Shown: piece after piece, positions 1 through 24,181 of the stretch | Layout: each line of letters opens with the position of its first letter | Numbering within the stretch: position 1 is the stretch's first letter | NCBI GenBank assembly: GCA_004431415.1 | Contig: QPMI01000039.1 | Location: forward strand, 620,001-684,000 | From: Cyanophora paradoxa CCMP329 | Lineage: Eukaryota > Plantae > Glaucophyta | DNA length: 64,000 nt | Direction: 5' to 3' | The notes under the pieces: generated by a model | The model's input: only the letters and a program-made list of their open reading frames with translations | What the model was told of the DNA's origin: nothing | The model's database searches: none | Position numbers and translations under genes: made by a program

Positions 1-354
1 GCGGCATCTTCGTGAATGAGAACGGGCGGGGCACGGTCGAGGGCAACGACGTCTACGGCAACGCGCTGGCGGGCATCGAGATCCGGGAGGGCTCGGACCC
101 CGTCTTCAAGGGCAACCGGTGCGCCCTGGAGCTCCTCTGTGCCTAGTCCCTCCACATCTCCTCCGCCCCTGACACCCGCCCCCCGCAGGGTGCACGACCA
201 GAAGTACGGGATCTGCGTGCGAGACGGCGGCAAGGGCACCATTTCTGGGAACACGCTCGAGCGCATCTCGGACCCGTCCTACGCGCCCTGCAGCGGCGTG
301 AAGGTCCTCGACGGCTGCACCCCGGCCGTGCAGGGGAACACGTTCCGCCAGTAG
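1..354 (+). CDS. 3' end of beta-helix repeat gene A, copy 1 (N-terminal module lies outside the window)
   Basis: Reads GIFVNENGRGTVEGNDVYGNALAGIEIREGSDPVFKGNR, then GT-AG intron 119-188, then VHDQKYGICVRDGGKGTISGNTLER...QGNTFRQ* (stop 352-354). The last exon matches the last exon of copy 3 (24017-24181). Confidence 0.9.
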
Positions 355-863
355 CGCTTGAATTGTGTTTGTCCTAGCTATGGTTGAATTGTGTGAAGTC
401 CTCCGGGCGCCGGCTCGAATCCAGGCAAGGCCGACTCGGAGAGAGCGAGCCCGATGCCAATCGCTATGGCGCGGATCGCGAACGACGTCGACGGCCGCGG
501 TCATGGCCGACGGCTGGAGAGGAGCACGCTGCAATACGCGGAATCGGCGGGGCCGCGAACTCCAAGCCGCCAGCGCACCCGGCCGATGAGAAGAGTCGCC
601 CGCGCCTCGACCTCGGAGCCCGGAGCCCCGCGGCGAGAGAGGACCGCAGATTCGGTCATATTTCCTATTTGCTAGTTTGTCAAGCGAGAGGCAGCGGTGG
701 CGTACGCGTGGTCGCCTGGCCGCGCCGCGGCCGGCGGGAGTGGCCGGCCATGGGCGGCCCTGGTCGCCTAGATCAGCCTAATTATAAGCCATCAGACGCC
801 GTTGCGGCAGCGCGCCTTGGCGCTGACGGTTCTGAACGCTGACAAGCATGGGCCAAGGTCGCG

Positions 864-1220
864 TCAGTCTGCGGTGGCGGCGGCACACACTTGGCCAAGT
901 CCACGACCGTCGTGGGCATCGGCTCCCGCGGCCAGCTTGAGCTGGGCGACACATTCGATGGTGCCTATGCGCCGCCTGCCGGCGCCTGGCCCCTCCGCCC
1001 CGCGCGCCGCCCCGCGCGCGCCTTGGCCCCCAGCATGACAACCGGGGACAGTACTAGTCTGCTGCGGTGCTGGCGGCGGCATGCACCTGGCAAAGTCCAC
1101 GACCATCGTGGGCATCGGCTCCCGCGGGCAGCTCGAGCTGGGCGACGCATCCGATGGTGCAATGCGCCGCCCCGCGCGCCGCCCCGCGCGCGTCTTGCAT
1201 TGGCCCCCGTGCCGCTAACA
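864..1220 (+). repeat. Imperfect ~185-bp tandem duplication upstream of gene B copy 1
   Basis: The motif AGTCTGC..GGTG..GGCGGCGGCA..CAC.TGG..AAGTCCACGACC.TCGTGGGCATCGGCTCCCGCGG occurs at ~866 and ~1055. Unit 2 has a partial second copy (13690-13810); unit 3 has a single copy. Confidence 0.7.
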
Positions 1221-4200
1221 TGGAGCGCGCGCCCTCTGCCTCAGTGTCGCCGAGCGACCACGAGGCGCGGAAAGAGAGCGCGCGGGGAGAGAAAGCCCCC
1301 GACGGCCCGGCCGCGAGCAAGTACAAGAGCCTCAGAAGGCGGCCCTCCTCGTGCGCTGCCCCGCAGTGCTCCGGCCCGCGCCGCCCGCGCCGCGCCGCGC
1401 CGCGCCGCGGCGGCCGACGGGCGCCCCGCGCCCCGCAGCATCGCGTTCCTCAAAGCCGAGCTCGGGAACATCAAGACGCTGCAGGGCGAGATCCGCCGCG
1501 TCATCGACGACCTGAGCCACGGTGCCTCGAGCTCGCGCGCGCGGGCGCGCGGGGCGTCGCAGCTAAAGCGACGCCGGGGTGGGGCGGGCAGACGCGGAGG
1601 GGGAGCGGGGCCTGGCGCTGGAGGTGGCGCAGGACGGCGTCCACGCCACCGCCGCCGTGGCGCAGGACGGCGTCCACGCCACCGCCGCCGTGGCGCAGGA
1701 CGGCGTCCACGCCACCGCCACCCTCCTGGGCGGACGGCCGGCGACGCGATGCGCGCCCTGCACGCGATCTGGAGGGGCGGGCGCAAGGTCCCCGCCCGCC
1801 CCCCTCGCCCCTCCCCCGCGCCCCCCGCGATGCGAGGCGCAGCGGGTCTTCGACCTGCTGGGCGGGGACGGCATGCTGTCTCTCTTTCAGATGGCCCGCG
1901 AGGCCTCCCGCGTGCGTCCGGCGGCGCTCGAACCCGCAGGGGGCCGCTTTCTTTCTCTCTGTCCTTAAGAGGCCGCCCGCAGGTGGAGGTGATGGAGAAG
2001 GCGTACAACCTCATCGCCTGCCTGGCCCAGGCGCTTGCTCTCCTCCCCTTGCTACTCCGCCGCCGCCCCCCTCTCACAGCTTCCCGCCGCAGTGGCCGGC
2101 GCTGCGGGAGGCGTTCGCGGCGGGGAACTACCACGCGATGGCCCTCGCAGACCTGCGCAACCCCATGCGCCAGAACAAATACGCGCGCCCCGTACCCCTC
2201 CCGCCCCGCCCCCTTCCCCTGGGCGCCCGCCTGACGCGCCCGGCCCGCAGCGCCGCTCCCCCGCCCGCGTTCTCATGGGCCTCGCCCAGCACGGTCCGCT
2301 TCGCGTACCCCCCTCCGACCCCGCGTACCCCCTTCGATCCCTCCCCCACCGCAGCGCCCATCCACGCGCGGCTCGCCGACGATCGCGCCCTCTCCGCCGC
2401 CGTCTCCCTCTCCATGTACCCCCCTCCCCCCCCTCCCCGCCCCTCTGCTCTCCCTGATCCTTCCTCCCCCCAAGGCACCCCGAGCAGGACCTGGTGGGGT
2501 ACGGCCTCCGCGCGATGATCGGCTTCATGCAGGGGACGCGTGCGCCGCTTGCTTCCCCCCCCTCCCACCCACCCCCTCGTACCCCCCTGACCCCGCCTCC
2601 GGCAGCGTCGTTCCGGCAGAAGCTGGCGTGCGACATGGCGCACGTCGCCCGCCTCGCCGCCTCCCGCGACCGCGCCGAGGCCCCCCTCGTCGCCCCGGGT
2701 ACCCGAGCCCCTCGGCCAGGGCCGGCCGGCCTCCTCCGGCGGGAGCTGACGCCGGGCCGGCGGGCAGCGCTGCGGTGCGTGCGGCTGGCGGCGATGGACA
2801 CGGGCGAGGTGGTGTCGCGCGACTGGATCGACCTCCAGAAGGAGCAGGAGGCAGCGATCCCGGGCCTCAAGGTGCGCGGCGGCGGGGGCTCTGGCCGCGC
2901 GGGGGCGGCGCGGTTCGGGGCGCCCGGCGCTCCGGATGCGCGGCGGGGCGCCTGATCCGATTCGATTCGATCTCATCTGATCCGATCTGAGCTCACCTGA
3001 TCCGCAGGAGCTGGGCCTCGCGGAGCAGTCCCTCCGCAAGGAGCTCGCGGCCCTCAACGGTGCGGTACCCCCCCAGGGGGGGGGAGGGCGGCTCTGAAGG
3101 GTCCCTCGCTCTCCCCCGCACGCAGGCGAGCGGGCGGTGGCGCGACTCTTCTCCGACAGCGACCGCATCTACTCCATGATCCAGGCGAGCGATAGAGCCA
3201 GCGGGCGACCGTTCCTCCGCCCCGTTCTCCCGCCCCCTCACGCCTGCGCCTCAGATCGTGGCGGGGGTGGGCCCCGCGTGGGCCGACGAGGGCGACGAGG
3301 CCCTCGCCTCCGGCGGCCGCTGGGCCCCCGTGCGCCCCCCGCCCCGCGCGAGATCGAATCCGACTGCTCGGGCGGCCGCTCACGCGCGGGGCGGGCGCAG
3401 AGCGCCGACGCGACGTACGTCCTCGCGACCGTCACCGCCCTCGGCGCGCCCCGCCCGCCCCTCCTCCCCCTCCCAGGCCCCCCGCCCTCTTCTGAGAGCG
3501 CCCCGCCCCGCCCGCCCGCCCCGCCGGCCCCGCAGACGCCGGCCTGAAGCTGCTGCTCCGGAACACCACCGCCTGCTCCATGGTCCAGGTGCCCCGGGCG
3601 GCCACACAGGCTCTCTTCCTCGGGCCCGCCCGCCTCACGCCCCGCCCCAGGCCGCGTGCGCCTCGGAGCTCGAGCCGCTGCGGGAGCGCTGCATCGCGGC
3701 GACGCGCTGCATCGAGCGCGGCGTGGCCGCCGCCTTCGCCGACCCCGACGCCTCTGCCGACGCCTCCGCCACTGAGGTGGCCCCGCCCCGCCCGATGGAT
3801 GCCACCGCCCCACGCTCCGCGCCTCACGCGCCGGCGCCGCCTCAGGTGAAGCCGATCGAGCCGGGGGCCCCCGAGAACATCCGCAGCGTCGACAGCGACG
3901 AGCTCGAGGCGCGCCCTTCAGAGTCTCCTCTGTCTTTGTCTCTCGCGGCGTCTTACGCTCTGATCTTCTTTGCAGGCGCGGCGCGCGGCGTCGATGCGGC
4001 GGCGCTCGATGACGGGCGCCAGCGGGCGGCGCGGGAGCCTCACCGGCGCCGGCGGGAGCGCCGGCCCCGGGCCGAGCGCCATACCCCCCTGGGTCGCGGG
4101 CCCCGGCGCCGGCCTCAGCAGCGTCGACTCGAAGGACTCGCTCGCCACCGTCACGTCGGCGCACGTGCGTACCCCCCTCCCCGCCCCCGCCCGGGGCCGC

Positions 4201-6916
4201 GCTGACGCGCCCGCTCAGTCCGTGGCGACGGTGGGGCAGCTGAGCCGCCGCGGGAGCGGGACCGTCAGCCACGTGCGCCCGTCCCGCCCCTTGGACTCTT
4301 TCTCGCCTTATCCGATCGGGGCGCAGGTCTGGGCAGACGCGCTGCGGCACGCCCACGAGGGCGAGCGCGACTCGCCCGCCTCGGAGCGCTCCGCTGGGGC
4401 TGCCACGAGCCACCGCCGCCTCTCGCTCGCGGCGGCGGCACCGCAGCACCGCTCCTCCGCCCGCTTCGCCGCCGCTTCCCACGGGGAGGGCCCCGACGAC
4501 GAGGCGGCGGGGGGCGCGCGGCTCGCGCGCTCCCTCAGCGTCCGGCGGGACTCGGCGCGCGAGGGCCCTGCGCACTCCCCGCAGCGCCGGCCCTCCCTCG
4601 CCCCCGCCGACCCCGCCGCCCTCCCGCCGCGTGGGGCGAGCAGGGCGCGCCCCCCGTCGCCTGGGGCGCACCCGCCCCCGGCCCCGCCCTCGCCTCGGTG
4701 AGAGCGGTACCCCTCCGACGGCCGAGCGAGGCTGAGGCGCCTGTATCCCCGCAGAACTGGGGCCGCCGCCCTAGCGCCGACATGGCGCACGGCAGCCTTA
4801 CCGCCGCCGACTTCCACGTGCATTCTCCTGTACCCCCCGCCCCGCCCGCAGTCTATTTATAGCGCGCGGCAGGCGGCGCAGGCGGCGGCGATCGCGGCGA
4901 CGATGGCGGCCCTGGGCCTACCCCCCGGCGCCCCCCCCCCCTCCTGTCCCTCCCCGTACCCCTCCCCGTACCCTCCCCGTCCCCGGCGCCCCTCTTTCCG
5001 TCCCCGGCGCGCCCCTCCCCCTCCCCGGAGCCCTCCTACCAGCCCCCGTTTCCCCTCAGCATCCCCCTCCCGTACCCCCGTCCGCCTTCTCCCCCCACGC
5101 CGCCGTCTTCGACGCTGCAGCACAGGTACCCCCGCGCCCACTCTCCGATGCTGGGGCAGCCGCTGATCCGCCCGTACCCCCCAGGGACGGGTACACCAGC
5201 ACCGGCACTCGCTGCCGGACCCGTCCCTGCCGGCGCCGGCGGAGGACGCGCCCCAGGACCCCCAGGCCTTCGCCGCCCCTACCCCCGCGCCGGGCCGCGG
5301 GCTGCCCCCCGCCGACTTCTTCCAGCCCGGGACCACATCCTCCGTGCGCGTACCCCCCTCGGCCCCGGCGCCGGCCTCACCGCCCCCCTTCGCCGGTGCA
5401 GAAGCGGGTGCGGAAGCCGAGCCTGTCGGAGGACGGGAGCCCTGCGACGGCGTCGGCGGCGGCGGCGGCGCTGGCGGCGGTGGGGCACCCGCACCCCGTG
5501 CCCCGCATCCACACCCCGGGCTTCCGCTCGGGCTCCATCAGCATCCGCCCCCCGGTGCCCTGCTGTGCTGCTCGCGATGCCCGCCGGGGCGCCGGCGTCT
5601 GATTCGCCGCAGGAGGACCGCCGGGCGAGCAGCTCGTCGCAGGGGAGCGCGGGGGCGGAGGAGGAGGAGCAGAGGGGGCAGCGCGGAGGGGCCAAGGAGG
5701 CCGCCTCGCCCCCGCTGCACACGGCGCCGGCGCCGGCGCCGCCCGGGGCCGTGCCGTCGTCGTCGACGCTGTCGCCGCCAGCCTCGGGCTTCCCCACCGG
5801 CGCCGGCCTCTCGCAGCGCTCCGAGGGCGACACGTCGCGCCCCGCCACCGTGCGCCCCGAAGCCTCGAGGGCCGCTCGGGCGAGGACCTGAGGCGCCGCA
5901 GGGCCGGAGGCCGAGCATAAGCGCCGCGGGCAACGAGCAGCCGTCCTCCCGTCCCCCGAACGTGCGCGGCCTCGCACATGTACCCCCGCCCCGCCCCGAG
6001 CAGCGCCTGAGGCCGCCTTTGCGGGCCGCGCAGAGCCGGCGGCCGAGCGTGAGCGTCGCCGAGCCCGCCAAGGAGGAGCCGGTGAGCATCCTGAAGACAT
6101 CCAAGGTACTGTACCCCGGGGGCTGGGCTTCGGCACGGTACCCCCCTGACGCCCGGGGGTAGAGCTTCAAGGCGAAGTCGTTCCGGTCGCGCTCCGTCTC
6201 CATCGACCCCGCCGCCCTCCCCGTGCGCCCCGTACCCCCCTCGCTCCCCCCCCCCCTGTTTTCGAGCCCGCCCCGCGCAGAAGCTGGACGACGACGCGGC
6301 GGCGGCGGCGGGGGGCCCCGAGACGGGCCGCCTCAGCTCGCGCCGGGCCAGCATGCCGGCGGCCGGCGGGGCCGCGGACGGCGCGGGGGTACGGCCGCCG
6401 CGGCCAGCAGCCTCTGGATCCGGCGGGGAAGGAGCCCGAGCCCGCGCCGGTGCGCCCCGCGCCCCCGCCCCCCGTACCCCCCGCCGGGCCTGAGGTTGGA
6501 TCCGCAGGAGGCGGCGCCGGAGGGCCCGGACCCGGCGGTCTTCGCGGCGAGCCTCTCGCAGCGGCTGCGGGCGGCGGCGGGGGCGGCGGGGCGCTGGCCG
6601 AGGCGGGCGGGCGGCGGGCGGCCCCGGGGCGCTGCCGCTGCTCGCCCGCGTCGACGCCCACGCCGACGCCCGCGCCGCCGCCATGCAGCCGCCGCCGCCG
6701 CCGCCCCAGGCCGCCTCGTCCCTAGGCCTGCTCCCCTCCTCCCGCCGTCAGTCCTTCTCCCTCCCGCCCCCCCTGCCCATGATGTACCCCCTCCCGACCG
6801 CCGCGCCCATGGCGGTGCCGTACCCCGCGGCGCTCGCGGCGGGCTTCGTGCCGCCCCTGCCCCCGATGCCGCCGCCCCCCCAATTCCTCCCGCACGCGTA
6901 CGCCCCTCACGCGTAG
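1220..6916 (+). CDS. Gene B copy 1: helical (ARM-like) protein with long Ser/Arg/Pro-rich tail; internally rearranged, possibly a pseudogene
   Basis: Multi-exon paralog of 13988-19973 (MERAPSASVSPSDH..., IAFLKAELGNIKTLQGEIRRVIDDLSH, VEVMEKAYNLIACLAQ, ...QFLPHAYAPHA*). Carries a 33-bp triplication, an apparent frameshift near 1730 and a 256-bp two-exon deletion. Confidence 0.65.
1624..1720 (+). repeat. 33-bp coding tandem repeat x3 (VAQDGVHATAA)
   Basis: GTGGCGCAGGACGGCGTCCACGCCACCGCCGCC starts at 1624, 1657 and 1690; only a single VAQDGVH is present in copy 2. Confidence 0.9.
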
Positions 6917-8679
6917 TTGGCCATACAAGCGCTTGGCCGTGAGCAGCATGCTGAGTTTCCCTCTTTTCGAATCACTTTCTTTTCTCTACTAAAGTTATCC
7001 ATAGTAGTCATATTTTACACGCCGTGGCGCTATGAATTAGTGTACGTACTTAGCTTCGACGTTAACAAGTAATGCGTAATGTATGCAATAAAGTAACAGC
7101 TCTAGATCTAGATCTGGATTTCAATTTGAACAGACGACCACGGGCGGCTTGAAAGAACTGCATGCGCATGTGGATCAAATTACTCGAGAGAGAGACGAGA
7201 GAGACGAGAGAGACGCAAGATCGAGAGACGCTGCCGCGCGCCGCCGGGGCCCGGCCCCGAAGAACTCCGGGGCCCGGCTTGAACCCGGGGCCCCATCTCC
7301 GGGCGCCGGGGTCGGCGCAAGATCGAGAGGCGCCCGCGCGCGCCGCCGGCGCCCCAGGCGCCGGCCGCGGGCGCGGCCCCCGCGCGCCTGCCGCGAGCCG
7401 ACGCGGCCGGCGCCCCCTTAGGTCCCGCCCATCGAGTCGAGCTCGAGACCGGCCGGCCGCAGCCGCGCCCGCCCGTTCCGCAGCGCCCCCGCCCCGCCCC
7501 GCCCCCTCCTCTGAGGAGAGGATGAGCCCGGGGCCGGACCCGGCCGAGGGCGCGGAGGAGGAGGGGGCGGGGGCGCGCGGGCGCCGGCGCGGCCCCCGCG
7601 CTCCCCTCCGCCGGCCGGGGCGGTCCTGGGGCGGGCCTTCGGGGCAGAGGATCCGGAGGACGGAGTGGCGGGGGCCTGGCTCCACTGAATCGGCGCCGCC
7701 AGAGCGCGAGGGCGCGCGGCGGAGGCGCCGGCGCCGCGGAGGTCTCCGGGCCGTCCTGCCGCCCCGCGGGGAGGCCTAGGGGCGACCGCTGTTCTCCGCG
7801 CACGCGGCGCCGGCACCGATCGGCTTCACCTGCCGCCACGTCGCGACGGAACGCAGCGACGGCGCAACGACCCGTGCGCCTGCGCTGGAGGCGGCGGCCG
7901 GGGCCGAGACCCGAGGGCGGGGGCGAAGCCGGAATGGCGGAAGGGGGGGGGCTGGAAGGGCCGCCGCCCGCCGCCTGCGCCGCCGCCTGCGCCGCCCGCT
8001 CCGCTGAAGGCGGGCCCGGGGCGCGGGGTACGGGAGGGCGCACGCGCTCGGCCGGACCGCCGGGCCGGGCTCGGCCCCGCGCACCTGCGCCGCAGCGCCC
8101 CGAAGCGCGCGAGCGGGTGCGGTCCGACGCGGGACCGCGCATTGCCGCCGGCACGCCGATTCGGTGCGGGGCCCTCGGCAGCCGGCCGCGGCAGCTGAAG
8201 GCAACGCGGGCCTCTTCTCCCGGCTGGCGGGAGTGAGTCTGGCTGGCCATGGCCGGCCGCTGCAGCTGAGAGTGAGCCGCTGCGAGTCTGGCTGGCCGGC
8301 CGCGGCAGCTGAGAGTGCGCCGCCGGCTCTCGGACGCACCGATCGACCTCCAACTATGGAAGCTCGTCCTGGCGGCGAGCGCGCGGGGCCTGGAACGCGG
8401 CGGCGAGCGCGCGGGGCCTGCGCAGGGGCCGCAAAAGCCGCTTCGTCGCCCTCGGCTCCGGCCCGCGGCCGCGCGGCCATGGCCACCCTAGGCCCGGCCT
8501 GTGCGGCGGCGGTGGGTTGACAGCTCCGAAACGCGGCTAAACGTTGGCAGCTCCTCGAGCTGCCGCAGCGCGCCCGGCGGCCCGCGAACACTGCGCGGAG
8601 AAGGCCACTGCGCGGATCGGGCTGGGCTCGGCCTTCTGGGGGAGAGGCTGCGGCTACTGCGAGAATTGAAATCAACGCC

Positions 8680-8785: not shown

Positions 8786-9167
8786 ATTGATCGCAACTGC
8801 CACGGCTCCCTGGGCCCTTCCACGCGGCGGAGGCGCGTGCGGCGGGTCATTCGAGCGCGGGTGCATCCGTACCGGTGCGCACAGCCGAGCGAATCACCAA
8901 GGCCGAAGTTTCATTAGCGTATTCATGTTTCGTGTTCTCTTTCCGGCAGAACGAACGAGCTTGGCTCTCCTCTAAGCGGCTGGCCGTCTTTGGCAGGCCG
9001 GGGCCGCCACGACCGAGATCCGGTCATCGGCCACCCCGCACACGCCTAGCTTCTTCTTGTGAAGGTGCAAGCGTCCCGTAAATTCGTCTAATTAGCGACT
9101 GCAGCTGACGCGTATGGGTTAGCTTGGCTTCCGATAGCCGGCGGCGGCGCCCTTGCAATCAAGCTCA

Positions 9168-12100: not shown

Positions 12101-13290
12101 CGGGGGGGGCATCGTCTTCCACACGTCGGCGAAGGGCGTCGCGGAGGGCAACGACGTCTACGGCAACGCGCTCTCGGGCATCGTGATCGAGACCGGCGCG
12201 GACCCCGTCGTGCGGGGCAACAAGGTCCACGACGGCAAGGAGGCCGGCATCCTCGTGTTCGAGAACGGGCGGGGCACGGTCGAGGGCAACGACGTCTACG
12301 GCAACGCGAAGTCGGGCATCCAGATCTCGATCGGCGCTGACCCCGTCGTGCGGGGCAACACGGTCCACGACGGCAAGGAGGGCGGCATCTTTGTGTACGA
12401 GAACGGGCGGGGCACGGTCGAGGGCAACGACGTCTACGGCAACGTGAGCACGGGCATCGCAATCAAGACCGGAGCGGACCCCGTCGTGCGGGGCAACAAG
12501 GTCCACGACGGCAAGGAGGCCGGCATCCTCGTGTTCGAGAACGGGCGGGGCACGGTCGAGGGCAACGACGTCTACGGCAACGCGAACTTGGGCATCGTGA
12601 TCCAGACCGGCGCTGACCCCGTCGTGCGGGGCAACAAGGTCCACGACGGCAAGGCGGGCGGCATCCTCGTGAATGAGAACGGGCGGGGCACAGTTGAGGG
12701 CAACGACGTCTACGGCAACGTGCAGCCCGGCATCGGGATCTCGACCGGCGCTGACCCCGTCGTGAAGGGCAACAAGGTCCACGACGGCAAGCAGGGCGGC
12801 ATCTTCGTGTGTGAGAACGGGCGGGGCACGGTCGAGGGCAACGACGTCTACGGCAACGCGTTCTCGGGCATCGAGATCAAGACCGGCGCGGACCCCGTCG
12901 TGCGGGGCAACAAGGTCCGCGACGGCAAGCTGGAAGGCATCTTTGTGTACGAGAACGGGCGGGGCACCGTCGAGGGCAACGACGTCTACGGCAATGCGCT
13001 GGCGGGCATCCAGATCAAGACCGGCGCGGACCCCGTCGTCAAGGGCAACCGGTGCGCCCTGGAGCTCCTCTGTGCCTAGTCCCTCCACATCTCCTCGGCC
13101 CCTGACACCCGCCCCCCGCAGGGTCCATGACCAGAAGTTGGGGATCGTCGTGCGAGACAGCGGCAAGGGGACCATCTCTGGGAACACGCTCGAGCGCATC
13201 TCGGACCCCGAGTTCGCAGTGAAGTGCAGCGGCGTCTGGGTACAGAGCGGCTGCACCCCGGTCGTGCAGGGGAACACTTTCCGCCAGTAG
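9168..13290 (+). CDS. Gene A copy 2: MLKL-like four-helix bundle + brace/coiled coil + TKL-type protein kinase + FBXO11-type right-handed beta-helix (~17 exons)
   Basis: Spliced N-terminus MDFLGTLQGIIDVALRIKEQADAAKANRAKCSRLARRVADLAPALKQV...AAREAEALVAKFGGRGFMMRFIKAGDDAAAFEEAHFAI. Kinase motifs LGEGAMGRVF, VAVKK, HPNILQFYG, HGDLKPANVL, DFG, GTPNYGPPE, DVFAFG, CWEEDPARRP. Then ELSVRPGESVAAAVARAAPGQTVRIQPGRYEEQLVLDK and ~7 46-aa repeats. Confidence 0.88.
12147..13050 (+). repeat. 138-bp (46-aa) intron-free coding repeat array, ~6.5 units
   Basis: Unit GNDVYGN-xxx-GIxIxxGADPVV(R/K)GN(K/T)VHDGK-xx-GIxVxENGRGTVE; scaffold DNA is nearly invariant between units. Confidence 0.95.
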
Positions 13291-13987
13291 CGCTAGCGCT
13301 CAAGTTTTGTACGCGAATTGATGAAGTCCTCCGGCCGCCGGCTCGAATCCAGGCAAGGCTGACTCGGAGAGAGCGAGCCCGATGCCAATCGCTATGGCGC
13401 GGATTGCGATCGACGTCGACGGCCGCGGACATGGCCGACGGATGGAGAGGAGCAAACTGCAATACGCGGAATCGGCGGGGCCGCGAACTCCAAGCCGCCA
13501 GCGCACCCGGCCGATGAGAAGAGTCGCCCGCGCCTCGACCTCCGAGCCCGGAGCCCCGCGGCAAGAGAGGACCGCAGCTTCGGTCATATTTACTATATAT
13601 TTGCTAGTTTGTCAAGCGAGAGGCACCGGTGGCGTACGCGTGGTCGCCTGGCCGCGCCGCGGCCGGTGGGAGTGGCCGGCCATGTGCTGGCGAGCTCCCG
13701 CGGGCAGTTTGAGCTCGGCGACGCATCCGATGGTGCCTATGCGCCACCCGGCCACTCCGCCCCGCGCGCCGCCCCGCGCGCGCCTTGGCCCCCAGCATGA
13801 CAAGATGGGCCGGGGTCAGTACTAGTCTGCTGCGGTGCTGGCGGCGGCATGCACCTGGCAAAGTCCACGATCATCGTGGGCATCGGCTCCCGCGGGCAGC
13901 TCGAGCTGGGCGACGCATCCGATGGTGCAATGTGCCGCCCCGCGCGCCGCCCCGCGCGCGCCTTGCATTGGCCCCTGTGCCGCTAAC

Positions 13988-16900
13988 ATGGCGCGCGCGC
14001 CCTCTGCCTCAGTGTCGCCGAGCGACCACGATGCGCGGAAAGAGAGCGCGCGGGGAGAGAAAGCCCCCGACGGCCCCGCCGCGAGCAAGTACAAGAGCCT
14101 CAGGAGGCGGCCCTCCTCGTGCGCTGCCCCGTAGTGCCCCGCCCCGCCCCCCCCCGCGCCGCGCCGCGCCGCGGCGGCCGACAAGCGCCCCGCGCCCCGC
14201 AGCATTGCGTTCCTGAAGGCTGAGCTCGGAAACATCAAGACGCTGCAGGGCGAGATCCGCCGCGTCATCGACGACCTGAGCCACGGTGCCTCGAGCTCGC
14301 GCGCGCGGGCGCGCGGGGCGTCGCAGCTAAAGCGACGCCGGGGTGGGGCGGGCAGACGCGGAGGGGGAGCGGGGCCTGGCGCTGGAGGTGGCGCAGGACG
14401 GCGTGCACGACATCGTCGCCGAGTCCCTCCTCACCCTCCGCGCCTCCGTGCGCCCCGCGCGCGTGCACTAAGCTGAGCGTGCTCGCCCCGCGCTGATCGG
14501 GGGCGGGGCAGGTGGACGCGCGCACGGCCGGCGACGCGTTTCGCGCCCTGCACATGATATGGAAGGGCGGGCGCAAGGTCCGGGCCCCGCCCTCCCCCCC
14601 CTCCCCCGCGCCCCCCGCGATGCGAGGCGTACCCCCCAGGGCGGGGCGGGTGCGATGTTCGAGAGGAACGAGGGGCTGCTGCCCTACGCGCGGGCCTCCC
14701 TCAAGGCCCCCTACGCCGGCCAGGTACCCCCCGCCCCCCCTCCCCCCCCGCGCCCCGCGATCGACCGCCTCCCCAGTACGCGCTGGCGCTGTTGGCGGAC
14801 GCGGCGACCTCCACCGCCCCAGGCGCGCCCCATCCCAACTGATTTGATCTCATCCGATCTGATCCAACCTCTCCGCGCAGTGGCGCAGCGGGTCTTCGAC
14901 CTGCTGGGCGGGGACGGCATGCTCGCCCTCTTCCAGATGGCCCGCGAGGCCTCCCGCGTGCGTCCGGCGGCGCTCGAACCCGCAGGGGGCCGCTTTCTTT
15001 CTCTCTGTCCTTAAGAGGCCGCCCGCAGGTGGAGGTGATGGAGAAGGCGTACAACCTCATCGCCTGCCTGGCCCAGGCGCTTGCTCTCCTCCCCTTGCTA
15101 CTCCGCCGCCGCCCCCCTCTCACAGCTTCCCGCCGCAGTGGCCGGCGCTGCGGGAGGCGTTCGCGGCGGGGGGCTACCACGCGATGGCCCTCGCCGACCT
15201 GCGCAACCCCATGCGCCAGAACAAATACGCGCGCCCCGTACCCCTCCCGCCCCGCCCCCTTCCCCGGGGCGCCCGCCTGACGCGCCCTGGCCCGCAGCGC
15301 CGCTCCCCCGCCCGCGTCCTCATGGGCCTCGCCCAGCACGGTCCGCTTCGCGTACCCCCCTCCGACCCCGCGTACCCCCTCCGATCCCCCCCCCCACCGC
15401 AGCGCCCATCCACGCGCGGCTCGCCGACGATCGCGCCCTCTCCGCCGCCGTCTCCCTCTCCATGTACCCCCCTCCCGCCCCGCCCCGCCCCTTCGCACCC
15501 CCCTGATCCTCCTCCCTCCCTCCCCCCCAAGGCACCCCGAGCAGGACCTGGTGGGGTACGGCCTCCGCGCGATGATCGGCTTCATGCAGGGGACGCGTGC
15601 GCCGCCTTCCCCCCCCTCCCACCCACCCCTCGTACCCCCTGACCCCCGCCCCCCTCCCCCCCGCAGCGTCGTTCCGGCAGAAGCTGGCGTGCGACATGGC
15701 GCACGTCGCCCGCCTCGCCGCCTCCCGCGACCGCGCCGAGGCCCACCTCGTCGCCCCGGGTACCCGAACCCCTTGGCCGGGGCCGGCCCGCCTCCTCCAG
15801 CGAGAGCTGACGCGGCATCGGCCCGCAGCGCTGCGGTGCGTGCGGCTGGCGGCGATGGACACGGGCGAGGTGGTGTCGCGCGACTGGATCGACCTCCAGA
15901 AGGAGCAGGAGGCAGCGATCCCGGGCCTCAAGGTGCGCGGCGGCGGGGGCTCTGGCCGCGCGGGGGCGGCGCGGTTCGGGGCGCCCGGCGCTCCGGATGC
16001 GCGGCGGGGCGCCTGATCCGATTCGATTCGATCTCATCTGATCCGATCTGAGCTCACCTGATCCGGTGCGCAGGAGCTGGGCCTCGCGGAGCAGTCCCTC
16101 CGCAAGGAGCTCGCGGCCCTCAACGGTGCGGTACCCCCCCAGGGGGGGGGGGAGGGCGGCTCTGAAGGGTCCCTCGCTCTCCCCCGCACGCAGGCGAGCG
16201 GGCGGTGGCGCGACTCTTCTCCGACAGCGACCGCATCTACTCCATGATCCAGGCGAGCGAGCAGGCGACCGTTCCTCCGCCCCGTTCTCCCGCCCCCTCA
16301 CGCCTGCGCCGCAGATCGTGGTGGGGGTGGGCCCCGCGTGGGCCGACGAGGGGGACGAGGCCCTCGCCTCGGGCGGCCGCTGGGCCCCCGTGCGCCCGCC
16401 CCGCCGCCCCGCCCCGCGCGGGATCGAATCCGACTGCTCGGGCGGCCGCTGACGCGCGGGGCGGGCGCAGGCCGCCGACGCGACGTACCTCCTCGCGACC
16501 GTCACCGCCCTCGGCGCGCCCCGCCCGCCCTCCCCCCCTCCCAGGCCCCCGCCCTCTCCTGAGAGCGCCCCGCCCGCCCCCCGCCCCGCCGGCCCCGCAG
16601 ACGCCGGCCTGAAGCTGCTGCTCCGGAACACCACCGCCTGCTCCATGGTCCAGGTGCCTTTTCGAAGGGGCGGGCGGCTCGCCCCGCGCCCACCTCACGC
16701 CCCGCCACAGGCGGCGTGCGCCTCGGAGCTGGAGCCGCTGCGGGAGCGCTGCATCGCGGCGACGCGCTGCATCGAGCGCGGCGTGGCCGCCGCCTTCGCC
16801 GACCCCGACCCCTCCGCCGACGCCTCCGCCACCGAGGTGGCCCCGCCCCGCCCGCTGCCTTCGCCCCGCGTTCCGCGCCTCACGCGCGGGCGGCGCCGCC

Positions 16901-19900
16901 TCAGGTGAAGCCGATCGAGGCGGGGGCCCCCGAGAACATCCGCAGCGTCGACAGCGACGAGCTCGAGGCGCGCCCTTCAGAGTCTCCTCTGTCTTTGTCT
17001 CTCGCGGCGTCTTACGCTCTGATCTTCTTTGCAGGCGCGGCGCGCGGCGTCGATGCGGCGGCGCTCGATGACGGGCGCCAGCGGGCGGCGCGGGAGCCTC
17101 ACCGGCGCCGGCGGGAGCGCCGGCCCCGGGCCGAGCGCCATACCCCCCTGGGTCGCGGGCCCCGGCGCCGGCCTCAGCAGCGTCGACTCGAAGGACTCGC
17201 TCGCCACCGTCACGTCGGCGCACGTGCGTACCCCCCTCCCCGCCCCCGCCCGGGGCCGCGCTGACGCGCCCGCTCAGTCCGTGGCGACGGTGGGGCAGCT
17301 GAGCCGCCGCGGGAGCGGGACCGTCAGCCACGTGCGCCCGTCCCGCCCCTTGGACTCTTTCTCGCCTTATCCGATCGGGGCGCAGGTCTGGGCAGACGCG
17401 CTGCGGCACGCCCACGAGGGCGAGCGCGACTCGCCCGCCTCGGAGCGCTCCGCCGGGGCTGCGCATGCCACGAGCCACCGCCGCCTCTCGCTCGCCGCGG
17501 CGGCCCCCCAGCACCGCTCCTCGGCCCGCTTCGCCGCCGCCGCGCCCCACGGGGATGTCCCGGACGAGGAGGCGGCGGGGGGCGCGCGGCTCGCCCGCTC
17601 CCTCAGCGTCCGGCGGGACTCGGCGCGAGAGGGCCCCGCGCACTCCCCGCAGCGCCGCCCCTCCCTCGCCCCCGCCGACCCCGCCGCCCTTCCCGCCGCG
17701 TGGGGCGAGCAGGGCGCGCCCCCCGTCGCCTGGAGCGCCCCCGCCCCCGGCCCCGCCCTCGCCTCGGTGAGAGCGGTACACCCCCCCGCGGCCGGGCGGG
17801 GCTGAGGCGCCTGTACCCCCGCAGAACTGGGGCCGCCGCCCCAGCGCCGACATGGCGCACGGCAGCCTTACCGCCGCCGACTTCCACGTGCATTCCCCTG
17901 TACCCCCCGCCCCGCCCGCAGTCTATTTATAGCTCGCGGCAGGCGGCGCAGGCGGCGGCGATCGCGGCGACGATGGCGGCCCTGGGCCTACCCCCTGGTG
18001 CCCCCCTCCCCCTCCTGGCCCTCCCCGTACCCCTCCCCGTCACCGGCGCCCCTCTTTCCGTCCCCGGCGCGCCCCTCCCCCTCCCCGGGGCCCCCCTACC
18101 AGCTCCCGTGTCCCCTCAGCATCCCCCTCCCGTACCCCCGTCCGCCTTCTCCCCCCACGCCGCCGTCTTCGACGCGGGAGCACAGGTACCCCCGCGCCCA
18201 CTCTTTGATGCTGGGGCAACCGCTGATCCGCCAGTACCCCCCAGGGACGGGTACACCAGCACCGCCACTCGCTGCCGGACCCGTCCATACCGGCGCCGGC
18301 GGAGGACGCGCCCCAGGACCCCCAGGCCTTCGCCGCCCCTACCCCCGCGCCGGGCCGCGGGCTGCCCCCCGCCGACTTCTTCCAGCCCGGGACCACCTCC
18401 TCCGTGCGCGTGCCCCCCTCGGCCCCGGCGCCGGCCTCACGGCCGCCCTGCGGCGGCGCAGAAGCGGGTGCGGAAGGCGAGCCTGTCGGAGGACGGGAGC
18501 CCTGCTACGGCGTCGGCGGCGGCGGCGGCGCTGGCGGCGATGGGGCACCCGCACCCCGTGCCCCGCATCCACACCCCGGGCTTCCGCTCGGGCTCGATCA
18601 GCATCCACCCGCCGGTGCTTTGCCTTGCCTTGCCTTGCTGCTCGCGATGCCCGCCGGGGCGCCGGCGTCTGATTCGCCGCAGGAGGACCGCCGGGCGAGC
18701 AGCTCGTCGCAGGGGAGCGCGGGGGCGGAGGAGGAGGAGCAGAGGGGGCAGCGCGGAGGGGCTAAGGAGGCCGCCTCGCCCCCGCTGCACACGGCGCCGG
18801 CGCCGGCGCCGCCCGGGGCCGTGCCGTCGTCGTCGACGCTGTCGCCGCCAGCCTCGGGCTTCCCCACCGGCGCCGGCCTCTCGCAGCGCTCCGAGGGCGA
18901 CACGTCGCGCCCCGCCACCGTGCGCCCCGAAGCCTCGAGGGCCGCTCGGGCGAGGACCTGAGGCGCCGCAGGGCCGGAGGCCGAGCATAAGCGCCGCGGG
19001 CAACGAGCAGCCGTCCTCCCGTCCCCCGACCGTGCGCGCCTTCGCACCTGTGCCCGCGCCCCGCCCCGAGCAGCGCCTGAGGCCGCCTTTGCGGGCCCCG
19101 CAGAGCCGGCGGCCGAGCGTGAGCGTCGCCGAGCCCGCCAAGGAGGAGCCTGTGAGCATCCTGAAGACGTCCAAGGTACTGTACCCCCGCTGAGCTTCGG
19201 CACGGTACCCCCCTGACGCCCGGGGGTAGAGCTTCAAGGCGAAGTCGTTCCGCTCGCGCTCCGTCTCTATCGACCCCGCCGCCCTCCCCGTGCGCCCCGT
19301 ACCCCCCTCGCTCCCCCCCCCTCGTATTTAGAGCCCGGCCCGTCCAGAAGCTGGACGACGACGCGGCGGCGGCGGCGGCGGGCCCCGAGACGGGCCGCCT
19401 CAGCTCGCGCCGGGCCAGCGTGCCGGCGGCCGGCGGGGCCGCGGACGGCGCGGGGGTACGGCCGCCGCGGCCAGCAGCCTCTGGATCCGGCGGGAAAGGA
19501 CCCCGAGCCCGCGCCGGTGCGCCCCGCACCCCCGCCCCCTGTACCCCCTACCGGGCCTGAGGTTCGATCCGCAGGAGGCGGCGCCGGAGGGCCCGGACCC
19601 GGCGGTCTTCGCGGCGAGCCTCTCGCAGCGGCTGCGGGCGGCGGCGGGGGGCGGCGGGGCGCTGGCGGAGGCGGGCGGGGCGGCGGGGCCCCGGGGCCCT
19701 CCCGCTGCTCGCCCGCGTCGCCGCCCACGCCGACGCCCGCGCCGCCGCCATGCCGCCGCCGCCGCCCCCGCCCCAGGCCGCCCCCCCCTGCTCCCTCCTC
19801 CCGCCGCCAGTCCTTCTCCCTCCCGCCCCCCTGCCCATCGTGTACCCCTCCCGACCGCCGCGCCCGTGGCGGTGCCGTACCCCGCGGCGCTCGCGGCGGG

Positions 19901-19973
19901 CTTCGTGCCGCCCCTGCCCCCGATGCCGCCGCCCCCCCAATTCCTCCCGCACGCGTACGCCCCTCACGCGTAG
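13988..19973 (+). CDS. Gene B copy 2: alpha-helical (ARM/HEAT-like) N-terminal region plus long disordered C-terminal tail, function unknown
   Basis: Exons splice in frame: ...HDAEGERGLALEVAQDGVHDIVAESLLTLRAS|VDARTAGDAFRALHMIWKGGRK|GGAGAMFERNEGLLPYARASLKAPYAGQ|YALALLADAATSTAP..RVFDLLGGDGMLALFQMAREASR|VEVMEKAYNLIACLAQ|WPALREAFAAGGYH...DLVGYGLRAMIGF. The ARM assignment is by pattern only. A few frame slips occur in G/C runs near the 3' end. Confidence 0.7.
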
Positions 19974-21672
19974 ACGGCCACACAAGCGCTTGGCCGTGAG
20001 CAGCATGCGGAGCTCTCTCTCTTATTACATTACTTTCTCTCATCTACTCCTCTACTAAAGTTAGCCATAGTAGTCATGTTTTACACGCCGTGGCGCTATG
20101 AATTAGTATACGTACTTAGCTTCGACGTTAACAAGTAATGCGTATACGTAATGTATGCATGCGCAATTTTAACAGTTACAGCTTTAGATCTGGATTACTT
20201 TCAACAGGGCTACCTGTTTTGCGACTTCATTCGACGGGGTCTGGTGAGGGCGGGCGCCGGGCGGGAGGGCGGGCGCCGGGCCCCGGGCCCCTCTCCGGGC
20301 TCCGGGCTCGGCGCTCGTGCGCCGCCGGCGCCCCGGGCGCCTATCATAGTGCGACGACGGGTTACGCAGGCGGCCCCTGGCCGAGGGCGGGGAACCTGGC
20401 CGAGGTCGGGGGCAGGACCTGGCCGAGGGCGGGGGAGGAGGAGGGGCGGGGGGGCGCCGGCGCCGGCGCGGCCCGCGCGCTCCCCTCCGCCGGCCCGCGC
20501 CGGTCCCGGGGCGGGCCTCCGGGGCAGAGGATGACGGGGAGGCGGGGGCCGGCGCCGGCGAGCGCGGCGCCGGCTCCACTGAAGCGGCGCCGCGCATGCG
20601 CAAGGTCGGCGGAGGCGCCGGCGCCGCTGAGGCCTCCGGGCTGTCCTGCCGCCGCGCCGGGAGGCCTGGGGACAGCGGCTGTTCTCCGCGCACGCGGCGC
20701 CGGCACCGATCGACTTCACCTGCCGCCCCGTCGCGACGGAACGCAGCGGCGGCGCAACGGCGCGCGGCGGCGAGGGCGCGGCGGCACGCGGCGGGACTCG
20801 GGCGAGCGGCAGCGGATGGCGCGGGGCCTGCGCGGAGCCGGAGACCGCGTCGTCGCCCGCGGTTAGCGCGGCGGCGCTGCGCGGTGGAGGACCCTCCGGA
20901 AAGAATCAAACGGACGCACCGATCGTCCTCCATGCCAGCTCCCGCCTCGCGCCCGGCAGCAGCGCGGCGAGCGCCGGTCCCTCTCATGAGAGGAGTCGCT
21001 GGAGTGTGCGGGGGACGAGCACTCTGCGCATACAGCGGGGAAGTTTCAACGCCGCGGCGCTGCGCGAGGCCTACAGCGGGGCTTGCCCTCGCCTTGGATT
21101 CTAACCTTAGAGGCTTGGACAGCCTAGGACGTCGACTATTACATCTCTTAGCTTGTATAGAGCCGCAAGCGGCGGCGGCGGCAGGGGCCAGGGCCAGGCT
21201 AATGGCAGGCTTGGAAGGGGGGGTAGAGGGCGGTTGGGTCGCGACTGCGTCAGCACATCGAGAGGCACACGCGGCGGAGGCGCGCTCGGCGGATCATTAG
21301 AGCACGGGCGGAACCGTACTGGTGCGCGCAGCGCGAATCACCGGGGCCGAAGTTTCATTAGCCTTTTCATGTTTCGTGTTGCTCTTTCCGGCTGAGCGAA
21401 CGAGCTTGGCTCTCCTCTAAGCGGGTAGTTTCCTTTGGCAGGCCGGGGCCGCCACGACCGAGGTCCGGTCATCGGCCGCCCGGCACGCGCGCGCCTATAG
21501 CTAGCTATCCCAATTTGCAACCGTTTAGCTGCTAGCGCTTAGGCCGACAGCTGCAGCTGCTCATGATCATAGACTCTCTTCGGAAGTTCCCCTTCAAGGC
21601 TTCGCCTAGCGCCGTTACCCATGCGCGGCGCGGGTGTGTGCGCAGCGCTGGCGGCGGCCCGCGGCCGGGGCG

Positions 21673-24181
21673 ATGGCGGCGGAGAGCTATGACCTCTTCC
21701 TCTCCCACAAGCAGAGCACGGGCGGCGACCTCGCCGGCCGCATCAAATCCGAGGTCCGCCCCCGTCGCCCGCCCGGCCCGCCCGCCCGGCCGGTTCGAGC
21801 TCCGCGGGCGCAGCTGGAGGTGCTGCGGCCGGGGATCCGCGTCTTCATCGACGTGGACGCTCTGGGCGACATCCACGACCTCGCGGCCGTCATCCGCAGC
21901 ACCCGCTGCTTCGTCCTCATCATCACGCCCGGTGCGCCGCGCGCGCCCGCACCAAAGAGAGCTCGATTCATGATCATCGCCCGCCGCTGCTTATATAATT
22001 ACGCGCGCTCGCTCGCGCCGCAGAGTGGCTGGAGAGCCTGTTCGTCCTGCGGGAGCTTGCCACCGCCGTCCGCGCGCAGCGCCGCATCCTCATCGTCTGG
22101 GACCGCGACCGGCTCCCCAACTTCCCCCAGAGTGCCCCCGCCCCCCAGCCGCTCTCCCGGCGGCCGCCGGGCTGTTAACGTTAAGGCGGCTGCAGTCGAC
22201 TCGCGGACGGTGCTGCCACGCATCGACGAGATGGGCGACGCCGAGCTGCGGGGGACCCTGCAGCGCGTCCTCATGATCAAGGCCCGCCTCGCTCGCCCCG
22301 CCGGCCCCGCTGCGCCCGGCGCGAGGGGCGGCGCAGGCGATTCCGTACATCCGGGAGAAGGCTTTCCGGGAGACGGCGCTGCGGGAGATCCTCCAGCGCT
22401 TCGACGCCGCCCAGCCCTTCCGCATGGACGCCGCCCCGGCCCCCGCCCCGGCCCCCGCCCCCATCAACCACGGCGCTGCGGCTGTGGTGCGCCGCGCGCG
22501 CCGCCGCTCAGCGGCTGCGGCTGCGCGGCGAAGTGACGCGGGGCGGCAGGCGGCGGACATGGCGCGCCTCTCCGTCTCCGTCCGCCCCCCCACCCCCCGC
22601 CCGCCCCGCCCTGCCGGCCCTGAGGCCCCGTAGGAGCTGAGCGTGCGGTCGGGGGAGAGCGTCGCGGCCGCCGTGGCGCGGGCCGCCCCAGGGCAGACAA
22701 TCCGCGTTCAGCCCGGCCGGTGCACATGCGTCCCTTCCCCGGCCCAGAGCGGCCCCTCGGACCGACCCGGCGCCGCAGGTACAAGGAGCAGCTGGTGCTG
22801 GACAAGGCGGTGCACGTCGTCGGGCCGCGGGAGGCCGTCCTCGAGTGGGACCAGAGCCCCACGCTGCACTGCAAAGGGCCTGTGGCGCCGAGCGTCAAGG
22901 GCATCACGATCCGGAACACGGGGCCGAAGAATGGGACACTGTGGATCACGGGCGGGAGCCAGGCGGTCGTGGAGGGCTGCGATGTGTCCAGCGCCGGCAT
23001 GAACGGCATCGAAGTCAAAGACGACGGGACGGCCCCGACGCTGCGCGGTGGGCGCCCCGGCCCACCCCCGCCCCCTGCCCTCCGTTTGACCGATTCCGCG
23101 ATGCGCAGGGAACGCGGTGCACGACTGCGGCGGGGCGGGCATCTTCTTCTACACGTCGGCAAAGGGCGTCGCGGAGGGCAACGACGTCTACGGCAACGCG
23201 AACTCGGGCATCCAGATCAGTGAGGGCGCGGACCCCGTCGTGAAGGGCAACAAGGTCCACGACGGCAAGGCGGCCGGCATGTACGTGCTGGAGAACGGGC
23301 GGGGCACGGTCGAGGGCAACGACGTCTACGGCAACGCGAACTCGGGCATCGCAATCAAGACCGGCGCGGACCCCGTCGTGCGGGGCAACAAGGTCCACGA
23401 CGGCAAGCAGGGCGGCATCCTCGTGTACGAGAACGGGCGGGGCACGGTCGAGGGCAACGACGTCTACGGCAACGCGAAGTCGGGCATCCAGATCTCGATC
23501 GGCGCTGACCCCGTCGTGCGGGGCAACACGGTCCACGACGGCAAGGCGGGCGGCATCCTCGTGAATGAGAACGGGCGGGGCACAGTTGAGGGCAACGACG
23601 TCTACGGCAACGTGCAGCCCGGCATCGGGATCTCGACCGGCGCTGACCCCGTCGTGAAGGGCAACAAGGTCCACGACGGCAAGCAGGGCGGCATCTTCGT
23701 GTGTGAGAACGGGCGGGGCACGGTCGAGGGCAACGACGTCTACGGCAACGCGTTCTCGGGCATCGAGATCAAGACCGGCGCGGACCCCGTCGTGCGGGGC
23801 AACAAGGTCCGCGACGGCAAGCTGGAAGGCATCTTTGTGTACGAGAACGGGCGGGGCACCGTCGAGGGCAACGACGTCTACGGCAATGCGCTGGCGGGCA
23901 TCCAGATCAGGGAGGGCGCGGACCCCGTCGTGCGGGGCAACCGGTGCGCCCGCGAGCTCCTCTGTGCCTATAATCCCCCCGCATCTCCTCCGCCCCTGAC
24001 ACCCGCCCCCCGCAGGGTGCACGACCAGAAGTACGGGATCTGCGTGCGAGACGGCGGCAAGGGCACCATTTCTGGGAACACGCTCGAGCGCATCTCGGAC
24101 CCGTCCTACGCGCCCTGCAGCGGCGTGAAGGTCCTCGACGGCTGCACCCCGGCCGTGCAGGGGAACACGTTCCGCCAGTAG
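21673..24181 (+). CDS. Gene A copy 3: SARM1-like TIR domain + FBXO11-type right-handed beta-helix
   Basis: Spliced MAAESYDLFLSHKQSTGGDLAGRIKSE|LEVLRPGIRVFIDVDALGDIHDLAAVIRSTRCFVLIITP|EWLESLFVLRELATAVRAQRRILIVWD...KAIPYIREKAFRETALREILQRF. A Pro/Ala linker follows, then ELSVRSGESVAAAVARAAPGQTIRVQPGRYKEQLVLDK and ~6 repeats. Confidence 0.9.
23177..23942 (+). repeat. 138-bp (46-aa) intron-free coding repeat array, ~5.5 units
   Basis: Same scaffold as 12147-13050; several units are identical to units of that array. Confidence 0.95.

Follow-up and report, generated by a model that had tools for sequence, protein, structure and literature searches.

In the NLR and STAND proteins, interchangeable TIR or four-helix-bundle heads stand in one chain with C-terminal repeats (LRR, WD40, TPR or ANK) and a central NACHT or NB-ARC NTPase. 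SARM1 (ARM-SAM-TIR) and the bacterial DSR2 and DSR1 proteins carry an NAD-degrading effector and a repeat domain without such an NTPase, MLKL places a helical bundle before a pseudokinase, and FBXO11 has a beta-helix as its presumed recognition module. HeLo, MLKL and RPW8 are treated as one membrane-targeting four-helix-bundle superfamily (PMC9815663). Here we describe a locus in which a single type of C-terminal beta-helix is joined to heads of both kinds, a SARM1-like TIR domain and an MLKL_N-like region followed by a kinase. The locus occupies the left part of a 64-kb stretch of DNA from Cyanophora paradoxa (contig QPMI01000039.1, positions 620,001 to 684,000), the whole of which is called the window and to which all coordinates refer. 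Glaucophytes, to which this species belongs, are an early-branching lineage of the Archaeplastida, and to our knowledge almost nothing is known of their immunity.

The window has a G+C content of ~72%, and its introns are short. Self-BLASTN revealed segmental duplication in tandem, the unit measuring 11-13 kb: the segments 3-1022, 12936-13691 and 23828-24844 are mutually ~90% identical, 1836-7078 matches 14882-20144 at 94% and 11592-12911 matches 22614-23941 at 88% identity. Each duplication unit closes with an exon of 138-bp (46-residue) tandem repeats, as detected by Tandem Repeats Finder. The closest database proteins to the window genes are the EukProt EP00741 models named tig00000157_g.... 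Gene models were built by an exon-chaining script that accepts GT-AG and GC-AG introns, and only those confirmed by RNA (gene 1) or identical to a database protein (gene 2, P0151) were used for the helix genes. Three paralogues (copy 0, gene 1 and gene 2), which have a beta-helix C-terminus in common but not all the same head, make up this young tandem array. An initial annotation, made from the letters alone, had proposed both the tandem paralogues and the unrelated N-termini on one helix, and both proposals hold: the first is borne out by self-BLASTN, by Pfam Beta_helix matches and by the 46-residue repeats, and the second by the MLKL_N-like region and kinase of gene 1 as against the SARM1-type TIR of gene 2. 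The parts of the array, all on the plus strand, are as follows.

3-118 and 189-354 (stop 352-354), plus strand: last two coding exons of copy 0 (TBLASTN, 100% to P0138 residues 481-573)
8821-9045, plus strand: gene 1 5' flank and start of the 5' untranslated region (BLASTN, 86.7% identity to the gene 2 flank 21268-21490)
9168-10075, plus strand: gene 1 MLKL_N-like region, resembling a four-helix bundle and brace; exons 9168-9203, 9292-9394, 9457-9692, 9757-9866 and 9942-10075, with introns confirmed by RNA
10139-10236, plus strand: gene 1 Pro/Ala-rich linker exon, ending in a GC donor; RNA joints 10075/10139 and 10236/10311
10311-11395, plus strand: gene 1 TKL-like protein kinase; exons 10311-10400, 10465-10554, 10618-10822, 10890-11023, 11094-11162 and 11219-11395
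11596-11611 (22618-22633 in gene 2), plus strand: 3' breakpoint of the head exchange (alignment and BLASTN)
11612-13290, plus strand: gene 1 beta-helix; cap exons 11612-11706 and 11751-12022, repeat exon 12079-13051, last exon 13122-13290 (stop)
21268-21490, plus strand: gene 2 5' flank, common with the gene 1 flank (BLASTN and alignment)
21673-22579, plus strand: gene 2 SARM1-like TIR and linker; exons 21673-21753, 21814-21931, 22024-22131, 22196-22281 and 22337-22486, and micro-exon 22550-22579
22634-24181, plus strand: gene 2 beta-helix; exons 22634-22719, 22779-23047, 23109-23943 and 24016-24181 (stop)

The boundaries of the unlike heads are sharp. The 5' flanks of the two complete genes, 8821-9045 and 21268-21490, are similar up to about 9045 and 21490, respectively, where the similarity stops; it returns about 15 nucleotides (nt) upstream of the acceptor of the first helix exon, at 11596 and 22618. 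Between these breakpoints gene 1 has 2.55 kb (MLKL_N-like region and kinase) and gene 2 has 1.12 kb (TIR), with no similarity between them. These alignments indicate that the heads were exchanged as a cassette via recombination in the intron preceding the first helix exon, and both heads are probably under the same promoter. In the independently annotated paralogues P0151 and P0138, the head meets the helix at the homologous exon. A TIR is present in copy 0 as well as in gene 2, so the TIR form is likely to be the ancestral one at this array. Such swapping of heads at a single intron is a clear example from nature of how exon shuffling can create new receptor-effector combinations.

Gene 2 (21673-24181, plus strand) has 10 exons, and its translation is identical to P0151 (tig00000157_g9717.t1) at 642 of 642 residues; a precomputed domain list gives TIR_2 and Beta_helix for this protein. 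An in-frame micro-exon of 30 nt (22550-22579, plus strand; AADMARLSVS) lies between the TIR and the helix and is required for the exact P0151 sequence. An AlphaFold2 model of P0151, built on a 42-sequence alignment, had a mean confidence (pLDDT) of 89.8 and comprised an alpha/beta domain (residues 6-155), a disordered linker (159-190) and a beta-helix (192-627), the last with regular three-strand coils and a pLDDT mostly >95. In Foldseek comparisons the TIR of the model matched SARM1 TIR crystal structures (TM score 0.75-0.79, root-mean-square deviation 2.2-3.0, ~160 columns), and the helix matched alginate epimerases, alginate lyases and phage tailspikes, with AlgE4, AlgG and tailspikes at a probability of 1.0. 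A profile of 20 TIRs of the family had the human SARM1 TIR as its best match in the PDB (E 3e-19, over the whole domain). The sole invariant column among these 20 TIRs is Glu77 of P0151; its aligned counterpart in SARM1 is the glutamate of HKEIV, E642 as numbered on the full-length chains. By sequence and predicted fold, then, the gene 2 TIR is of the SARM1-like NADase type with a predicted catalytic Glu. Copy 0 carries a related head. Its tail alone lies in the window and equals the final 93 residues of P0138 at 100% identity, so the copy that had been surmised upstream of the window can now be catalogued: P0138 (573 amino acids) has TIR_2, WW and Beta_helix domains in a Pfam scan, with TIR_2 at 28.6 bits against a cutoff of 28, and the TIRs of copy 0 and gene 2 are 79% identical.

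Gene 1 (9168-13290, plus strand) has 16 coding exons and 15 coding-region introns and encodes 996 residues in an intact frame. Transcript evidence was taken from Logan RNA contigs of runs X1 and X3, which belong to two studies, with DNA run X16 as a control. Spliced RNA contigs confirmed 13 introns, namely the intron 9062/9121 in the 5' untranslated region and twelve in the coding region, and none of the spliced joints of gene 1 occurred in the DNA run. The gene is thus transcribed and spliced in two studies, and joint 9062/9121 implies that the transcript begins upstream of 9062. Joints 12022/12079 and 13051/13122 lie within or next to the helix. GC donors (GCCCGC...) occur in 4 of the 15 coding-region introns (9692/9757, 10236/10311, 10400/10465 and 10554/10618), all of them confirmed by RNA; predictors that accept GT-AG only would break gene 1, and this may be a reason why a database protein is missing. 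Indeed, the search with the helix of the paralogue P0021 (367-1167 aa) yielded no database protein equal to gene 1, an alignment mixing the kinase P0087 with gene 1 exons retrieved P0087 only, and the open reading frame (ORF) 10600-11598 (exon part) retrieved nothing.

One RNA contig from each study spans the N-terminal exons and all of the kinase exons to 11397, which places the helical head and the kinase on one transcript. Past 11397 the contigs of both studies carry 116 more nt, and the next two exons predict 95 + 21. The kinase-to-helix joint 11395/11612 is not among the alignment rows listed, nor is 11162/11219, a joint necessarily present in the same contig; as the latter must exist and yet is unlisted, the non-listing of 11395/11612 is no evidence of absence. 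We infer joint 11395/11612 with high confidence from the continuity of the frame and the 116-nt remainder, and RNA thereby supports the spliced model on which the initial annotation depended, directly at 13 introns and by inference at this one.

Domain searches with gene 1 were done exon by exon. MLKL_N (PF22215) was the top match of exon 2, where it covers profile positions 9-39 at 17.6 bits (E 0.0028), and also of exon 3, where it covers positions 54-105 at 16.3 bits (E 0.007). These matches are colinear and sum to 33.9 bits against a cutoff of 27, with each alone below it. The Atlas language-model neighbours of exon 3 belonged to MLKL_N/MCAfunc/DUF7792/RPW8 clusters (score 0.85), a lead only, and PDB sequence searches with single exons of the MLKL_N-like region gave no meaningful match. 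For the kinase, Pfam matches were colinear on four exons (profile 4-34, 67-121, 123-166 and 200-253), and the best PDB matches of its exons were the TKL-type kinases CERK1, ZAK/MLT, CTR1 and Roco4. The motifs GEGAMGRV, VAVKK, HGDLKPAN and DFG are all present, and because these catalytic motifs are kept the kinase is probably catalytically competent and not an MLKL-type pseudokinase. The likeness to MLKL that had been suggested at the outset extends to the order of an MLKL_N-like region, putatively a bundle, and a kinase but not to a pseudokinase.

The beta-helix itself, a right-handed one of the FBXO11/CASH (PbH1) type, is very regular, and each of its 46-residue repeats forms a double coil. 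Pfam Beta_helix (PF13229; cutoff 25.9) matched ORF 12087-13079 with an E value of 1.7e-66 (223 bits) and ORF 23117-24181 with one of 3.7e-93 (310 bits). Tandem Repeats Finder counted 6.5 copies of the unit in gene 1 and 5.6 in gene 2; the former has seven unit-start motifs, with the seventh unit interrupted by the last intron, and the latter has five complete units and a sixth that is interrupted by the last intron. Across the 11 complete units of the two genes, 33 of the 46 positions are invariant. Positions 27 and 29 vary in few units only, and the other variation clusters at positions 9-11, 14, 16, 17, 24, 33, 34, 37 and 39, which leaves a nearly constant scaffold with some 9-11 variable positions; the matching places read 'x' in a consensus drawn from 42 TIR-helix proteins, most of them bacterial. 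The alternating strand pattern suggests that the most variable positions face outward, on two strands per double coil. The ratio of nonsynonymous to synonymous differences (pN/pS) is 1.59 at the variable codons against 0.17 in the scaffold, values that are descriptive only as the sites were picked after viewing the data. Whole repeat units have also been deleted or recombined between copies. In the search with the P0021 helix, which is 65-70% identical to the helices of the window, coral FBXO11 was found at an E value of ~1e-101 with 34-35% identity, and by this measure FBXO11 is a true sequence relative of the window's beta-helix, in accord with the FBXO11-type fold first assigned to it.

A hydrophobic-segment scan of TIR-helix proteins, that of gene 2 included and that of gene 1 outside its scope, flagged none. 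The products of genes 1 and 2 look cytosolic, and neither N-terminus resembles a signal peptide. NACHT and NB-ARC domains were, as previously claimed, not found by Pfam in P0138, P0151 or the gene 1 exons, nor was any other NTPase such as the AAA type, and the AlphaFold2 model of P0151 has none.

The helix is not confined to this array. We counted 18 members of the helix family in Cyanophora, with the following heads.

TIR: 6 members, including P0014, which is SAM-TIR-ARM-helix
SINA/TRAF-like RING, zinc finger and coiled coil: 4 members (P0180, P0187, P0191 and P0206)
Lipase_3 / alpha-beta hydrolase (class-3 lipase): 1 member (P0001)
MLKL_N-like region and kinase: 1 member (gene 1)
65-residue domain without a Pfam match: 3 members (P0021, P0190 and P0199)
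Coiled coil only: 1 member (P0164)
No head: 2 members (P0009 and P0169)

The conserved domain of ~65 residues lies N-terminal to the helix at P0021:77-140, P0190:1-65 and P0199:1-65 and has the motif LYFYW...IDDGFFY.ARRGG.WP. In P0180, P0187, P0191 and P0206 the Pfam matches on the RING side are below threshold yet consistent in four of four, and the helix occupies the place of the TRAF/SINA substrate-binding domain; the genes of these four proteins are on other contigs.

Beyond Cyanophora, an exhaustive HMMER search with the helix returned 10,920 cluster representatives at E <1e-3, of which 807 were at E <1e-30. The helix is at the C-terminus in most family members. A Pfam census of partners was made on 138 N-terminal parts taken from the best 150 helix matches.

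Protein kinase: 38/138
TIR: 20/138
Caspase: 14/138
F-box: 5/138
Hsp70: 4/138
CHAT: 3/138
Trypsin: 2/138

Further partners were SIR2, U-box (in Polarella) and AAA ATPase. Full-length TIR-helix proteins of 470-690 residues are frequent in bacterial genomes and metagenomes, with examples on a contig of a Rhodothermaceae metagenome-assembled genome and on a 1.9-Mb bacterial contig. The effector parts match PADLOC models (CBASS SAVED-TIR, ThsA/Dsr SIR2, SAVED-CHAT, PD-T4-6 kinase and PDC-S66), but no model in PADLOC-DB 2.0 matched the helix region. Among the bacterial members, some are secreted proteins or place their helix outside the cytoplasm. P0032, P0061, P0088, P0101, P0121, P0127 and P0170, which come from JGI, Logan and other metagenome or database sources, are kinase-helix proteins with one hydrophobic span between kinase and helix, and their helix is probably the extracytoplasmic sensor of a receptor kinase. 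Family proteins stand in public databases under automatic names only, many of the metagenomic ones as 'F-box protein 11'. A full-text literature search, with subscription journals mostly beyond its reach, found no paper describing a beta-helix that bears a TIR, MLKL or caspase head. The supposed novelty of the architecture is to this extent upheld, although it is not special to this genome, since bacterial TIR-helix proteins are widespread. We know of no defence phenotype for beta-helix-effector proteins.

Between the helix genes sits a further gene, here called gene X, whose exons of 14-50 codons are too short for Pfam.

1439-7080, plus strand: gene X copy 1, with many short exons; the exon chain is from the exon-chaining script only
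~14203-19193, plus strand: gene X copy 2, the duplicate of copy 1

The gene X copies are 94% identical, above the flanking helix genes (88-91%); gene X is part of the duplication unit and not demonstrably of the helix-gene system. Its start occurs three times (1046-1539 = 13813-14303 = 24681-25163), with first exons that contain the motif IAFL[KR]AELGNIKTLQGEIRRVIDDLSH. The third start is at the right end of the array, where the exon-chaining script links it, putatively, to a hybrid histidine kinase (HATPase_c 29641-30159). Further to the right are a Bac_rhodopsin exon (38089-38388, minus strand; Pfam E 3e-16), pointing to a microbial-type rhodopsin gene on that strand, and an mTERF-family gene (51394-51903, plus strand; Pfam E 1.4e-25). 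Two more tandem arrays, 48567-49471 and 60373-61492, have periods of ~141 bp and ~130 bp, respectively, and units that are 92-94% identical; they are without a convincing coding frame and are unrelated to the helix repeats.

On balance, and with modest confidence, we read the locus as a family of cytosolic single-chain proteins of immune type that join a recognition module to an output module and act independently of an NTPase. An immune, allorecognition or cell-death role is suggested by domain associations, because many of the partners of the helix (TIR, caspase, CHAT, trypsin and SIR2) are destructive effectors of conflict systems. The helix would bind a ligand that marks non-self or damage and that may be polymeric, and ligand binding would relieve autoinhibition or cluster the receptors. 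Activation may then lead to NAD+ cleavage by the TIR heads and, in gene 1, to a kinase-driven release of a membrane-active four-helix bundle. No STAND NTPase would be needed, as in SARM1 or bacterial DSR2.

Several observations weigh against the immune reading. The MLKL_N assignment depends on two sub-threshold single-exon matches. Between genes 1 and 2 the ratio of nonsynonymous to synonymous substitution rates (dN/dS) is 0.46 for the cap and 0.56 for the C-terminal part, and there is no overall nonsynonymous excess between the two; the diversifying sensor postulated by the initial annotation is seen as a positional pattern only, with variation limited to few repeat positions. None of the remaining window genes, which encode a histidine kinase, a rhodopsin and an mTERF protein, is an immune gene. 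Across the family a protein kinase is the commonest partner (38/138), and several bacterial proteins have a membrane span between kinase and helix, as would ordinary receptor kinases. The two bacterial TIR-helix genes inspected adjoin housekeeping genes or transposases, and neither an operon partner nor a clear defence island was found around them. Finally, F-box, RING, U-box and Hsp70 partners indicate general substrate recognition rather than cell death. That the partners include cell-death effectors, as had been predicted, is supported by TIR, caspase and, tentatively, the MLKL_N-like region; that they are exclusively death domains is not, as the kinase is commonest and F-box, RING, Hsp70 and lipase are found too.

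These last partners bear on an alternative that we regard as unlikely but take seriously, namely that the helix serves general recognition of substrates or partners in regulation and proteostasis, reading endogenous proteins, as the helix of FBXO11 reads the substrates it sends to degradation, while the heads (RING, F-box, U-box, kinase or TIR) deliver differing outputs, post-translational or metabolic. FBXO11 is a close relative of the helix (E ~1e-101 in the P0021 helix search), F-box domains were present in 5 of 138 N-terminal parts, a U-box in Polarella and SINA/TRAF-like RINGs in four Cyanophora paralogues, and both the prevalence of kinases and the overall dN/dS of <1 would suit such a role. 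However, TIR with an NADase Glu, caspase, CHAT, SIR2 and trypsin are destructive and are rare in housekeeping regulation, and lineage-specific expansion, tandem duplication and head swapping also speak against it.

A role as glycan or cell-wall sensors or enzymes has a lower probability still. A CASH-type helix would here bind or modify a polysaccharide, such as an exopolysaccharide or the peptidoglycan in the wall of the Cyanophora plastid, with the heads signalling the status of the envelope. The best structure and sequence matches of the helix are indeed alginate C5-epimerases, alginate lyases and phage tailspikes, and the secreted bacterial members and those with an extracytoplasmic helix would fit. 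However, the products of genes 1 and 2 look cytosolic, with no hydrophobic segment in the gene 2 protein (the scan having left gene 1 aside), and the repeats are unusually regular and, judging from the secondary structure of the AlphaFold2 model, without the irregular loops of catalytic grooves.

We see only a small chance that gene 1 is a young chimera of no particular function, which arose neutrally as segmental duplication and exon shuffling reworked a recombination-prone, repeat-rich region. Nucleotide identities of 88-94% mark the copies as very recent, no database protein matches gene 1, and repeat units have been shuffled or deleted between copies; yet a frame of 996 codons is open across 15 introns and correctly spliced in two studies, the catalytic motifs are intact and dN/dS is <1. 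That gene 1 is an artefact of the gene model, its kinase and bundle exons and its helix exons belonging to separate transcripts, is very improbable, for although joint 11395/11612 is missing from the alignment rows listed, so is joint 11162/11219, which is necessarily real, and the contigs of both studies continue for the expected 116 nt (95 + 21) past 11397, no stop precedes the donor at 11395, the frame is kept, and the head-to-helix joint of P0151 and P0138 falls at the homologous exon.

The immune-type reading of the locus can be widened, tentatively and at a probability well below even, to the family as a whole. Beta-helix-effector fusions may form an unrecognised class of NTPase-independent pattern-recognition or abortive-infection receptors in bacteria (with TIR, SIR2, caspase, CHAT and trypsin effectors) and some eukaryotes, to which Cyanophora would add MLKL-like, TRAF/SINA-like RING and lipase forms. 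FBXO11 would be a domesticated relative, and the hypervariable stripe of the helix would bind the ligand and cluster or unlock the effector. If the helix is the sensor, it would be a new scaffold of innate-immunity receptors beside LRR, WD40, TPR and ANK, without a STAND NTPase, and a SARM1-type TIR, an MLKL-type bundle and a TRAF/SINA-type RING would be tied to one recognition module in a glaucophyte. It might also hint at the kind of surface with which FBXO11 recognises its targets. The bacterial full-length homologues make the receptor idea directly testable by phage assays.

Among the closest known systems, FBXO11 resembles the window genes in its related beta-helix, which in both cases presumably serves a modular protein for recognition. 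However, coral FBXO11 has an F-box and a UBR zinc finger, neither of which was found by Pfam in P0138, P0151 or the gene 1 exons; the heads here are TIR or MLKL_N-like plus kinase, and the helix of genes 1 and 2 is built of a very regular 46-residue unit. With SARM1 and C. elegans TIR-1, gene 2 has in common the sequence and fold of its TIR, the aligned Glu (E642) and the lack of an NTPase; in either case the likely regulator is a repeat domain of the same polypeptide, and P0014 even joins SAM, TIR and ARM. The order is nevertheless reversed, with the TIR N-terminal and a beta-helix in place of the ARM repeats, and genes 1 and 2 are without the SAM octamerisation domain. Gene 1 follows MLKL in its order of MLKL_N-like region (a sub-threshold match), helical connector and kinase fold of the TKL group, but where MLKL has a pseudokinase gene 1 keeps VAVKK, HGD and DFG and continues into a beta-helix of 500 residues.

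The bacterial DSR2 and DSR1 proteins resemble the TIR-helix and SIR2-helix proteins in having, in one chain and without an NTPase, an N-terminal NAD-degrading effector and a C-terminal repeat sensor, and P0045, a SIR2-helix member, matches the PADLOC SIR2 models of ThsA, Dsr2 and Dsr1. The sensor fold differs, and the PADLOC 2.0 models are without beta-helix proteins. With the NLR and STAND proteins, in turn, the helix genes share interchangeable heads of TIR or four-helix-bundle-like type, C-terminal repeats, lineage-specific expansion and tandem arrays, whereas the central NACHT or NB-ARC NTPase is absent and a beta-helix takes the place of LRR, WD40, TPR or ANK repeats. As the defining NTPase is missing, the helix genes are an analogue of the NLRs and not a member of them.

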